Below are positions 40,021 through 43,654 of a DNA stretch of 64,000 nucleotides, piece by piece. Position 1 is the first letter of the stretch, and each line of letters opens with the position of its first letter. A program made the translations under genes and the position numbers. Below the pieces are notes generated by a model that did not search any database, was not told the DNA's origin, and saw nothing but the letters and a program-made list of their open reading frames with translations. The DNA lies in the sequence record OP310984.1, one strand, 5' to 3'.

Positions 40021-40515
40021 ATGTCAAATAAAGCTAAAGAACCAACTCTAACTAAAGAACAGGAAAAGACTCTACGTCTATTTGAACGTGCAGTTGGAGC
40101 ATCAGCTGCGGCAGCTGATCATATTCTTAATCGCGATGGTTGGGATGTTGTCAATGTACTAGCAGGTTCTGTAGGTAAGCGTATTCTACAAACTGAAGTA
40201 TTTATTAATCCAGTTATTAATAAGATCAATGAAATCATTCCGACGTTATCTGATCCTACTGGATTCCAAAAGAACCTACAAACAGTTATTGCCGACCTTA
40301 ATCGACTAACTAAAATTATCAGTGTCCTATATGCACAACATCAAGGTAAGGCTGGTCCAGCAAATAATGAAGATGAACTAAAACTCATCAGTGAACTTGT
40401 TACTAAATACACTGGTATTGAAGGTGCTATTGAACGCGGTATTGATGGTGTAATCCTAGCGATGATCGGCACTCTTCGAGAAGCTGGTTGGGACGAAAAA
40501 CTAATTCAACAATAA
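40021..40515 (+). CDS. Hypothetical helical protein (gp78-like)
   Basis: ORF track; GGAG SD. Confidence 0.7.
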   Translation: MSNKAKEPTLTKEQEKTLRLFERAVGASAAAADHILNRDGWDVVNVLAGSVGKRILQTEVFINPVINKINEIIPTLSDPTGFQKNLQTVIADLNRLTKIISVLYAQHQGKAGPANNEDELKLISELVTKYTGIEGAIERGIDGVILAMIGTLREAGWDEKLIQQ

Positions 40516-40526
40516 TGGAGTTTTAA

Positions 40527-42128
40527 ATGGCTACTGCTGACTTCGATAATGAGTACGATGATACTCCAGAAGAGAATTTACTAGATCAAATTGATGAGAT
40601 CAATGCGCAACACGATCCTGACTCTAGTATTGAAAATAATGACGAGGTGGAAACTCCACCTTTCGTTCCTGATCAAAAAGAAATTAAACTACGTATTCCA
40701 CGTAATGCTAAAACTGGAAATATCCGGGATGCTTCTGAACCGGCTATTAAAGATAGTGCTAGCATTCTTACTTTACTACGTGAGAATCCCCAGACTGTTT
40801 ATAATTTCCTGGATCACAATAAAGAACTATTTAAAGCATTTGCTGATAATAAAGTAGATGACACTAGTGACGGTGTAAAGTGGACAGCTGCTATTCTGGA
40901 AGGCTTAGCTCACTCTATTGTTGAAGATTCGCCAATTGGTGCAACTGCCCGAGAAGGTTCTGAATGGTCTAGTGAAATTCCTTATGGTGAAAAGATCATT
41001 CGACCTGGCCGACCTGTATTTAATACCAATGGTCGTAAAATGACCGATGATGAAACTCTAGTTTTCCTAACACGTAAAGCTAACATCGGTACGCCATATG
41101 ATACTTTCCTACCTCATTCAGGTATTTGGGTAAAACTACGTGCACCTACTGGTACTGAAGTAGCTGCCCTACAAGCACGTCTAGCACAATTAAAGATCCG
41201 GCTAGGCGCTGAATCAAAAGGTATGCTGTTCTCAAACATGGCAGCTGTGTTACTTAACATGGTTAGTAGTTTAGCACTTGCATGTGTTATTCAATCCAAC
41301 TATAAGTTCAACACTCCAACTGACCTAGAGCATGTTATCTCAGTAGCTGATGAACCATTCTTACATCATGCACTAGCGGCGACTATGTATCCAGATGGAT
41401 TTAATTATAGTTATCCATGCATTGCAGATGCCAATACATGTAACCATATTGAAACAGCGAAACTTAATATGTCAACGCTTGTTCAATATGATCTACTGGC
41501 ATTCTCAGAAGAACAAAAGAAATATATTGCACGTAAGTTTAATGCATGTACTGAATCTGATCTTAAGACTTATAAAGAAGGATTCCGTATTGAAACTCAA
41601 GTAACTGAAATGTTTGGTGACGTTGGTGTTGTTCTTGAGATGTGTACAATTGCTGATCGCCGAGAGTCTGGTGATAGTTGGATTAACTCAATTATCGATA
41701 TGACTCAAGGTAGTTTTAATGAACCAGTCGATGGTCCGCAACGTTCTCAGTATATTGCACGTTTACAAAAGATCTCTATTGCCCGTCAGTTCTCACATTT
41801 TGTTAAAGAAATTAAAGTACGTGAAGATGACGATGGTGAAAGTTCTGAAGACAATATTCGTACTGCAACCACTAATCGTGAAACTATTGAAAAGTTCTTA
41901 ACTAATATTCTATCCACACCGGAATATAATGACCGCTTTATTAATGCGGTGAGTAACTTCATTGATTCACAACTAATTGGAATGATTGCAATTACAAGTT
42001 GGAATTGTCCAGTATGTGAGTCACCTGCTGCTACTAAATTTAAAGAACGTTTCCCACACTTAATCCCTATTGACATGCTGTCAACTTTTTTTACTTTGGC
42101 GGCCTCGAAGTCAAACCGGATGGTGTAG
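40527..42128 (+). CDS. Probable tail/baseplate assembly chaperone (gp77-like), zero-frame product
   Basis: 533 aa; YPC..C and WNCPVC Zn-type motifs and terminal STFF, like T4 gp26/gp51-type chaperones (inference). Confidence 0.6.
   Translation: MATADFDNEYDDTPEENLLDQIDEINAQHDPDSSIENNDEVETPPFVPDQKEIKLRIPRNAKTGNIRDASEPAIKDSASILTLLRENPQTVYNFLDHNKELFKAFADNKVDDTSDGVKWTAAILEGLAHSIVEDSPIGATAREGSEWSSEIPYGEKIIRPGRPVFNTNGRKMTDDETLVFLTRKANIGTPYDTFLPHSGIWVKLRAPTGTEVAALQARLAQLKIRLGAESKGMLFSNMAAVLLNMVSSLALACVIQSNYKFNTPTDLEHVISVADEPFLHHALAATMYPDGFNYSYPCIADANTCNHIETAKLNMSTLVQYDLLAFSEEQKKYIARKFNACTESDLKTYKEGFRIETQVTEMFGDVGVVLEMCTIADRRESGDSWINSIIDMTQGSFNEPVDGPQRSQYIARLQKISIARQFSHFVKEIKVREDDDGESSEDNIRTATTNRETIEKFLTNILSTPEYNDRFINAVSNFIDSQLIGMIAITSWNCPVCESPAATKFKERFPHLIPIDMLSTFFTLAASKSNRMV
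42086..42092 (+). promoter_or_regulatory. Candidate -1 ribosomal frameshift heptamer T-TTT-TTT
   Basis: In-frame X-XXY-YYZ; -1 frame opens after TGA 42071..42073 and stays open to 42589. Confidence 0.75.
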
Positions 42129-42589
42129 TTAATGATCTGAGATATAGTCGTCTTGAGGCCACTTTCAAGGAAGATAGTGGTCACATCCTACATCCAAACT
42201 TTGGTTATGATAAGTTAACTGAAGATGATACACACTTAGATAGACTATTATCGACAGTAGGGGCAGTAAGACCGTCTACAGCAGCACGTTTAACAAGAGA
42301 AGCATATCTACTTGATTACGATATCGGTTCACCAGAAAACGGACCCATGTGGTTAAATAAGGTAAATCCTAAAGAGGACTTTATCGAAGGTGGGTTGAGA
42401 AGGAGACTGACTAGAGATTTCTTCAAGTATAAAGTAGGTAGCTTATCTAATATGTCATTAACTGAATTCTTTGAATTAGCTTATTCTGAGGTAGAATACA
42501 TAATTGAATTATGTAGAAATATTACCCATAATGAAGCTGTTAATAACAATAACCAGTTAAATGAATTAAACAAGCCGTTAACTAAATAA
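42092..42589 (+). CDS. -1 frame extension of gp77 (gp76-like; GT-type chaperone), 165 aa
   Basis: YFGGLEVKPDGVVNDLRYSRLEATF...; 85 open codons precede the first ATG (42347), none ATG/GTG/TTG. Confidence 0.7.
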   Translation, partial: YFGGLEVKPDGVVNDLRYSRLEATFKEDSGHILHPNFGYDKLTEDDTHLDRLLSTVGAVRPSTAARLTREAYLLDYDIGSPENGPMWLNKVNPKEDFIEGGLRRRLTRDFFKYKVGSLSNMSLTEFFELAYSEVEYIIELCRNITHNEAVNNNNQLNELNKPLTK

Positions 42590-42605: not shown

Positions 42606-42633
42606 CCCCTCTCCACATGGAGAGGGGTTTATG
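42606..42633. terminator. Bidirectional terminator
   Basis: CCCCTCTCC-ACAT-GGAGAGGGG-TTTATG between convergent genes. Confidence 0.75.
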
Positions 42634-42638
42634 TCGCC

Positions 42639-42782
42639 TTACTTACGTGCAAAGCTAGCTACAAGACCTTTGATAGCTAGAGCGACCATCCAGGCCGTTA
42701 ACCCCTTCATTGGGCGGATATCAACCCGTTCTTCGATATCCAGATTGCCCTCACTATTGATTACCTCAATTCGTACTTGCAT
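42639..42782 (-). CDS. Small protein with C-terminal hydrophobic helix (47 aa), not in ORF track
   Basis: MQVRIEVINSEGNLDIEERVDIRPMKGLTAWMVALAIKGLVASFARK*; AAGGAG SD. Confidence 0.7.
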   Translation of the reverse strand: MQVRIEVINSEGNLDIEERVDIRPMKGLTAWMVALAIKGLVASFARK

Positions 42783-42877
42783 GGTCTACTCCTTATCAGG
42801 GTGGGATATGATATTCAAAAGTCTTTTGATATAAAGATGGCATATTACCCCACCAATAAAAGGCAGGGTAATATTTA

Positions 42878-43072
42878 TTAAACCATCAGATATCCTAATG
42901 GGAATAAAGCAAAGAAGCCATATAAAACAACAAGCAGTGTCTTTTGGCGAACATACCGGGATTTAATACTATCTTTATCTAAGTCAAACTTGACATAAAG
43001 ATAAATCTGATAACTTTTATATCCCATACTAGCCACAAGGGCTATTACTATAAGTTGACACAAAAAGACCAT
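42878..43072 (-). CDS. Small two-TM membrane protein (64 aa)
   Basis: Two hydrophobic stretches separated by a charged loop. Confidence 0.6.
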   Translation of the reverse strand: MVFLCQLIVIALVASMGYKSYQIYLYVKFDLDKDSIKSRYVRQKTLLVVLYGFFALFPLGYLMV

Positions 43073-43127
43073 AGTGGGATGCTCTTATTATTAGAGAACA
43101 ATGATCAATTGTTCTTACATAGCATGT

Positions 43128-43319
43128 CTATTTAATATGCATGATTATCATATTAAATAACCACAACCCTAACATAAGGGTAAACATACTGCAAATCAAG
43201 CCACTTACAATCATTGCTTTTTGTTTGATTGTTTTAGCAGCAGCAAGAAATATAATTGAAGTTATTAATCCACTAAATGCAATTAATAGTGGTACTAAAA
43301 ATAACAATACCCGAGCCAT
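43128..43319 (-). CDS. Small two-TM membrane protein (63 aa)
   Basis: GAGGTG SD; two hydrophobic stretches around KTIKQK. Confidence 0.65.
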   Translation of the reverse strand: MARVLLFLVPLLIAFSGLITSIIFLAAAKTIKQKAMIVSGLICSMFTLMLGLWLFNMIIMHIK

Positions 43320-43331
43320 ATAGACACCTCA

Positions 43332-43589
43332 TCAAAATAGATAAGTTGTACATGTCAGTGAATAGTTAGTCCAGCAACTAACAATAGTACTTACCCATAT
43401 GGTAACTAATACAATGCTTACGGAGAGAAAAAGCATAGCGTACTGGCATGCACTTTTATTAAAGATATCTTTAAACTCAAGATATGTTTTAATAATAAAT
43501 ATCAGCATGCATGTTAGAAGAATATCAACTAAGATCAAAGTACTGACTAGAAGCCATGTTGCACCAAAGATCTGATCAACTGTATACAT
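43332..43589 (-). CDS. Small two-TM membrane protein (85 aa)
   Basis: Start MYTVD coupled by TAATG to upstream 21-aa ORF (track start 43604). Confidence 0.65.
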   Translation of the reverse strand: MYTVDQIFGATWLLVSTLILVDILLTCMLIFIIKTYLEFKDIFNKSACQYAMLFLSVSIVLVTIWVSTIVSCWTNYSLTCTTYLF

Positions 43590-43654
43590 TATTTCCACTC
43601 CCATAGTTTATAAGCTATAACTACAATTGTAATCATAATCAATTTTTTCTTCAT
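43589..43654 (-). CDS. Micro-protein, single TM (21 aa), not in ORF track
   Basis: MKKKLIMITIVVIAYKLWEWK*; AGGG SD; first ORF after promoter motif. Confidence 0.55.
   Translation of the reverse strand: MKKKLIMITIVVIAYKLWEWK

Follow-up and report, generated by a model that had tools for sequence, protein, structure and literature searches.

Programmed -1 frameshifts close to the end of a gene are known from several systems. The tail-assembly chaperone genes of the phages lambda (G/GT) and P2 (E/E') each yield a short and a C-terminally extended form, and the P2 E/E' site is a U-run. In the structural-module gene 10A/10B of phage T7 a C-terminal extension arises through a -1 shift which occurs at a low level close to the stop. 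In bacterial dnaX, -1 slippage on a homopolymeric heptamer produces a fixed ratio of two forms, tau and gamma, with a common N-terminal body. We know of no lambda-type tail chaperone pair in the nucleus-forming jumbo phages. Here we analyse gene 77 (product gp77) of a phiKZ-like Pseudomonas phage, located in a stretch of 64,000 nucleotides from sequence record OP310984.1. This whole stretch is called the window, and positions without further label refer to it. In an initial annotation, made from the letters of the window, the locus was proposed to hide a tail-assembly chaperone pair of the G/GT type, with a -1 shift leading from gp77 into the downstream frame. The family-wide comparison presented below strongly supports a programmed -1 shift which joins gp77 to the frame of gp76.4. 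The proposed kinship with the lambda and P2 chaperones is not borne out.

The frame-0 open reading frame (ORF) of gp77 (PHIKZ077) extends from 40527 to 42128 on the plus strand and encodes 533 amino acids (aa), according to an ORF check and the phiKZ annotation. The slip site is located at 42086..42092 on the same strand. It consists of seven T, read in frame 0 as T_TTT_TTT, i.e., a slippery heptamer X_XXY_YYZ in the proper register, and encodes the two Phe residues of a conserved FFTL motif. Frame 0 reads ACT TTT TTT at this site and, after 11 further codons, ends with the stop at 42126..42128. The -1 frame opens past a TGA at 42071..42073, four codons ahead of the T-run. It continues through 42092..42589 of the plus strand for 165 codons and a stop (42587..42589), and would constitute the C-terminal extension of a long product. 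Codon 85 of this frame, the ATG at 42347, is its first ATG, GTG or TTG. From the gp77 stop up to this ATG, i.e., at 42129..42346 (plus strand), the -1 frame has no such codon, and the stretch is unannotated in the GenBank records. A recheck confirmed all initial coordinates, those of the ORF, the T-run, the TGA, the open -1 frame and the start-less span. The predicted product sizes of 533 and 687 aa are likewise correct, the latter by arithmetic only (522 + 165).

The region under study is identical (100%) to that of Pseudomonas phage Wadjak 2 and 98.7% identical to that of phiKZ. Of 47 phiKZ-like genomes that match, 40 were listed, and every one of these aligns in a single piece of exactly 2063 bases, without any variation in length. 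Thus, the length of the T-run is no assembly error. For a wider comparison we assembled 71 metagenomic loci from IMG/VR and 11 GenBank phages, in which the gp77 homologues are 23-100% identical; the analysis was scripted. 69 of the 71 metagenomic loci extend far enough for an examination of the slip site, and 64 unique genes were available for codon counts. A gp77 homologue is present in every phiKZ-related jumbo phage sampled, comprising phages of Pseudomonas, Erwinia, Salmonella, Serratia, Ralstonia, Klebsiella and Vibrio as well as metagenomic lineages; altogether 219 phage records contain one. In protein databases the homologues have 485-633 aa and share the same end point, a few residues past the nearly invariant FFTL-like motif.

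When the slip sites are compared a uniform picture emerges. In the window and in all 69 metagenomic loci of sufficient length the T-run is located at the FF of the FFTL-like motif, a frame-0 stop follows 8-17 codons past it, and the -1 frame continues without a stop for 149-180 codons past the run, while the +1 frame mostly closes within 20 codons. The same architecture is found in PhiPA3, Goslar, SPN3US (genes 39/40), pEa_SNUABM_43, D6, phiKZ, Serratia phage PCH45, Halocynthia phage JM-2012, Vibrio phage BONAISHI and Ralstonia phage RSL2. In these phages, phiKZ being left aside here, the end of the -1 ORF coincides with the end of an annotated small downstream gene. The conservation of the T-run and of the open -1 frame, suggested at the outset as a check, is therefore present in all loci which extend far enough, and by this comparison the slip-site architecture is established. 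The frame-0 tail past the slip site varies in length, from 8-17 codons in most relatives over 20-22 in the SPN3US-like phages, JM-2012 and RSL2 to 44 in PCH45 (loci L076 2557..4943 for SPN3US and L079 566..2766 for PCH45). Consequently, the overlap of the two frames is not fixed.

The codon usage at the motif argues that the T-run is more than the coding of Phe-Phe. For its first Phe the motif uses TTT in 63 out of 63 unique genes; the remaining gene of the 64 has GTT TTT. All other Phe codons of the same genes are predominantly TTC (693 TTC, or 70%, versus 292 TTT, or 30%), and TTT is used at the first Phe of the motif even in genes which possess no other TTT. The second Phe codon of the motif is TTT 46 times, whereas 19.7 are expected. 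In terms of information, 60 of 60 contexts have the same third base in the first Phe codon (2.0 bits), while other third positions just upstream carry 0.07-0.8 bits. In the relatives the heptamer can be written as N_TTT_TTY, with N being T in 43 of the 64 genes; two genes have TTG and one has GTT TTT. A synonymous disruption of the T-run in orthologues, which would have spoken against the initial proposal, is not encountered at the first Phe codon. Conservation at a synonymous position, here established by comparison, is what a programmed -1 site would be expected to display. As a signal the T-run combined with the open -1 frame is far beyond chance.

Further to this point, the start-less stretch has the properties of coding sequence. 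Translated -1 pieces from different phages align as protein from their first residues, and conserved motifs lie ahead of any start codon, in many phages well upstream of the first possible start, which in the window is codon 85. Counted from the slip site, the first starts occur anywhere between -30 and +136 codons. Among 38 pairs of moderate divergence the differences at codon positions 1, 2 and 3 between the frame-0 stop and the first start number 110, 61 and 219; downstream of the first start they number 957, 548 and 2289, i.e., the same proportions prevail. PHROG 12109, the family of the annotated versions, matches the -1 piece of the window over residues 26-163. The initial concern that the -1 frame upstream of 42347 might lack conservation can thus be set aside. 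The comparison indicates that the -1 piece is under purifying selection: an overlapping ORF without a conserved start of its own is conserved as a coding sequence.

An exhaustive HMMER search of 1.84 billion representatives retrieved 39 relatives of the -1 piece, all of them 45-175 aa long with ragged N-termini, and no in-frame fusion of the -1 piece to a gp77-like body. Relatives of 684-687 aa carry their extra length at the N-terminus, so they are no fused homologues. Since none of these relatives of the -1 piece continues a gp77-like body in the same frame, it is the arrangement in two frames that is conserved, as one expects if both forms are needed. By the same comparison neither a fused nor an independently initiated version exists in this family. 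The only database protein which covers the start-less part is a 96-aa partial protein labelled Klebsiella pneumoniae (P0021). Its contig has 288 bases, its identity to residues 23-113 of the start-less -1 stretch amounts to 90%, and it most likely represents phiKZ-like phage DNA inside a bacterial assembly.

Taken jointly, the family-wide conservation of the T-run at a synonymous site, the open and start-less -1 frame and the conservation of its protein strongly support a programmed -1 shift. Gene 77 of phiKZ-like and related jumbo phages would then be recoded, two proteins being made from one message. The majority of ribosomes would remain in frame 0, terminate 11 codons past Phe-Phe and release the 533-aa gp77. 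A fraction would slip back by one base at the U-run of Phe-Phe (N_UUU_UUY; U_UUU_UUU in the window), with tRNA-Phe re-pairing on the run, and would read 165 more codons in the -1 frame. The resulting form would have 687 aa, its last 80 residues being the gp76.4 of the databases. Both forms would share the gp77 body and differ at the C-terminus. The short form is predicted to end with a helix (model residues 517-532), which in the long form would give way to about 45 poorly modelled residues followed by a domain of helices. That the two frames are joined by a frameshift of one kind or another, ribosomal or transcriptional, we regard as very probable; the ribosomal mechanism as outlined here is likely. 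No prior description of a shift in gp77 was found in the searchable literature, in agreement with the initial annotation, which was aware of none for phiKZ; mentions of "gp77", "gp136" and "gp47" concern other proteins.

Several observations weigh against such a ribosomal mechanism. The long product is so far a prediction from sequence. In 21 of the 64 unique genes a base other than T precedes the run, so that the heptamer there departs from the full canonical form. Since Phe-Phe is conserved as protein, the amino acids themselves account for part of the T-richness, and the third positions alone are independent evidence. Neither a hairpin or pseudoknot 5-9 nucleotides downstream nor an upstream Shine-Dalgarno-like element was identified as a stimulator. 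The initial annotation had proposed a stem of 42101..42108 with 42153..42160 and a pseudoknot arm of 42122..42128 with 42188..42194 (together 42101..42194, plus strand). Both pairings do exist, with one G-U pair each. They compete with each other in predicted folds, the folds of the window past the slip site are no more stable than those of shuffled sequences (z -0.5 and -1.1), and 60 relatives have no downstream structure in common (mean z -0.6), so the pairings are at chance level and a functional element is not supported. A Rfam scan of the site region gave no match. Shine-Dalgarno-like four-mers, counted 20 to 5 bases upstream of the slip site in loci L003-L072 and compared with random positions inside the genes, are rarer than background (3 of 60 versus 17%), which may merely reflect the conserved protein sequence at this position. 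A stimulator is common at -1 frameshift sites, yet it is not obligatory.

The missing stimulator, in the window and in 60 relatives, would also favour a different origin of the same protein. The phage RNA polymerase might add one U on the T-run in some of the transcripts. The run has seven T in the window and six or seven in most relatives, and these phages transcribe by means of unusual multisubunit polymerases of their own. On the other hand, several lineages keep the same open -1 frame with only five T (GAG TTT TTC, or GTT TTT followed by A), known polymerase slippage requires longer runs, and the invariant element stands in codon register, a Phe codon preceded by T, as would fit re-pairing of the tRNA. 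Because the five-T lineages retain the open frame and the invariant element is in codon register, ribosomal slippage is favoured and transcriptional slippage appears distinctly unlikely. We infer, then, a ribosomal rather than a transcriptional shift. As no RNA stimulator was found, the condition of the ribosomes during infection might determine how efficiently it occurs. One report describes a ribosome-binding protein, gp014, made by phiKZ (PMC11849849).

Two further readings dispense with a shift altogether. According to the first, the downstream ORF is a gene of its own, translated from the ATG at 42347, from a non-standard start or by re-initiation, and the T-run simply encodes Phe-Phe, which is indeed conserved as protein. 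This is how the locus is annotated: in all 11 GenBank records opened it is given as two separate hypothetical proteins, or as gp77 without the second ORF, no joined coding sequence being present in any of them, and gene callers find downstream ORFs of 45-175 aa. In phiKZ this ORF is PHIKZ076.4 (42347..42589, plus strand, 80 aa as annotated). An independent gene is difficult to reconcile with the 85 start-less codons of the window, conserved as protein and evolving as coding sequence, with the scattered first starts, which recur in the genes called in the relatives, and with an invariant TTT at a synonymous site against a background of 70% TTC. Further, no Shine-Dalgarno-like sequence is seen ahead of the ATG at 42347. 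Two separate genes are thus very improbable, and PHIKZ076.4 most likely is merely the tail end of the extension and no gene in its own right. The second reading takes the arrangement for a homopolymer miscount or for a decaying gene with a dead downstream remnant. Homopolymer runs are error-prone in some sequencing chemistries. The initial annotation had accordingly envisaged that resequencing might fuse the two ORFs, which the uniform length in the 40 phiKZ-like genomes mentioned above contradicts. More than 60 divergent lineages display the two-frame arrangement, none of them fused in frame, and the purifying selection on the -1 piece is at odds with decay. On the strength of this comparison error and decay can be considered as already refuted, with practically no probability left.

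How does the locus then relate to the known systems? With high probability it belongs among the programmed -1 shifts in phage genes. In its gene architecture it resembles lambda G/GT and P2 E/E': in a morphogenesis-type gene, a -1 shift shortly before the first ORF ends would lead to a short and a C-terminally extended form, the site is a U-run as in P2, and the arrangement is kept although the sequences diverge. The identity of gp77 as a chaperone of this kind, claimed initially, cannot be upheld. Neither piece matches a tail-assembly-chaperone family in Pfam, PHROG or NCBIfam, and the sole tail-assembly-chaperone match of the gp77 model in BFVD has an E value of 2.4. At 533 aa gp77 is several-fold larger than these chaperones of roughly 100-150 aa, an unusual size which had been remarked upon initially. 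The gene neighbourhood is a different one as well. In phiKZ and its relatives the gene is not positioned between tail tube and tape-measure genes; its neighbours are gp78, the head protein gp79, the beta subunit of the virion RNA polymerase gp80 and the helicase gp75, with similar neighbours in the relatives. The initial statement that no tape-measure gene adjoins gp77 is therefore correct.

T7 10A/10B is similar in that a -1 shift near the stop of a structural-module gene appends a C-terminal extension. It belongs to another protein family with another role, and the T7 extension is short and dispensable, whereas that of gp77 comprises 150-180 residues and is conserved across the whole family. 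With dnaX gp77 would share the homopolymeric heptamer and the common N-terminal body of two forms. In dnaX an upstream Shine-Dalgarno-like element and a downstream hairpin are present, neither of which was found for gp77, and the shifted product is the shorter one, while for gp77 it would be the longer.

The protein itself gives few hints. The AlphaFold model of gp77 is a confident one, with a predicted local distance difference test (pLDDT) score of 78.5 and a predicted template modelling (pTM) score of 0.81. The model of the -1 extension (pLDDT 79.8) is mostly helical, with about 45 low-confidence residues ahead of the helices. Neither model has a match among the solved PDB structures by Foldseek, nor was one found with PDB sequence profiles, and searches of Pfam, PHROGs and NCBIfam with gp77, the -1 piece, gp78 and distant homologues returned unnamed PHROGs only. 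Four nearly invariant Cys residues of gp77, arranged in two pairs (positions 298, 305, 494 and 497), probably form a structural zinc site. Weak zinc-finger matches were seen for gp77 (zf-MIZ, E 0.19) and for the Goslar homologue (YgiT-type, E 0.017).

Against predicted viral structures Foldseek aligned the gp77 model with its jumbo-phage orthologues and, more weakly, with eight proteins of 225-284 aa (E 2e-4 to 4e-2, target-normalised TM score 0.39-0.57). Six of these eight are named T4-type baseplate hub subunit, assembly protein or assembly chaperone, and the note "T4 gp26 like" appears in one GenBank record. T4 gp26 is listed as a hub assembly chaperone (PMC3004832). For comparison, T4 genes 26 and 51 were taken from NC_000866 and a family alignment was built for profile-profile comparison. 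Both T4 proteins match Pfam PF12322 (T4_baseplate; 1e-64 and 4e-52). Apart from the Foldseek matches of predicted structures, this family has in common with gp77 two Cys pairs followed by FF.L close to the C-terminus, and T4 gene 26 also has two products (26 and 26' in the record). These products differ in origin, as the second T4 product derives from an internal start and not from a shift, and gp77 is 2.5 times longer than the T4 proteins. A kinship with T4 gp26 is further weakened by the sequences: gp77 has no PF12322 match in Pfam, and hhalign gave probabilities of 1.3% and 4.5%. A slip site at the T4 26/25 junction was considered and rejected; Phe-Phe is encoded there by TTC TTT and the -1 frame carries a TGA stop. 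T4 gene 25 starts in the -1 frame of gene 26 and overlaps its stop by one base (L078 3803..5229, containing genes 26, 26' and 51).

As to function, the Goslar virion-structure paper makes no mention of the homologue gp81, nor do the paper text and supplements covered here name SPN3US gp39 or gp40 as virion proteins. This fits a non-structural assembly factor, yet it is no proof. From the structural models we infer, tentatively and as the best lead, though a possibility which falls short of being probable, that gp77 is a non-virion morphogenesis factor and possibly a distant structural relative of the hub-assembly chaperones gp26 and gp51 of T4, the shift setting the ratio of a plain form to a form with an extra binding domain. 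The looser idea of a morphogenesis chaperone in two forms is reasonable but unproven. A more far-reaching version, according to which nucleus-forming jumbo phages adjust by frameshifting the ratio of two forms of a gp26/gp51-like hub-assembly chaperone, is rather unlikely.

Alternatively, the same recoding could serve head assembly or the packaging of the virion RNA polymerase instead of the tail or baseplate. From phiKZ to JM-2012 and BONAISHI the neighbourhood is kept, with a gp79-like head protein and the beta subunit of the virion RNA polymerase nearby. In SPN3US the flanking products gp38 and gp41 are low-abundance virion proteins which were undetected in polymerase-less particles (PMC5694885). 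Position is weak evidence for such a role, as genes of the same function are notoriously scattered in these genomes (PMC5105663). Moreover, phiKZ gp78 and SPN3US gp38 have no detectable similarity, and the only structural resemblance of gp77 is to hub-assembly chaperones. The neighbourhood leaves room for a role in the head or in polymerase packaging, which we regard as rather unlikely.

If gene 77 is recoded as proposed, the locus is wrongly annotated in more than 200 deposited genomes, where it appears as two genes or as a single gene with non-coding DNA, and a conserved protein of about 78 kDa is absent from every proteome search database for these phages. The shift would provide a concrete handle on a conserved gene without assigned function, since a fixed ratio of two forms, one of them with an extra helical domain, would be the signature of an assembly factor. 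It would moreover offer a clean example, from nature, of a -1 site which has persisted over very long times with no RNA stimulator to be recognised. Should the hub-chaperone reading be true, the principle of the frameshifted chaperone would also cover hub chaperones of the T4 style, built in this case on a scaffold that is unrelated and much larger.

A few features of the vicinity complete the picture. gp78 (PHIKZ078, 164 aa) is encoded at 40021..40515 on the plus strand and matches PHROG 14050. gp77 starts 11 bases past its end, and their common unit probably begins with gp78. All GenBank records opened have a small gene on the same strand directly upstream of the gp77 homologue. Just past the stop of the -1 ORF, at 42606..42627, there is a terminator hairpin of 9 pairs, 7 of them G-C, flanked by T-runs on both strands; no terminator-like site exists between the gp77 stop and 42347. 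On either strand the hairpin can be read as a terminator, and it marks the end of the unit of gp78, gp77 and the extension. It looks like a shared bidirectional terminator, and separates the gp77 unit from convergent small minus-strand genes, gp76.3 to gp76. The latter are four small ORFs of 47-90 aa (PHIKZ076.3, 076.2, 076.1 and 076; minus strand, 42639..43604) between the terminator and the helicase gene gp75, function-unassigned and added by a later re-annotation of phiKZ.

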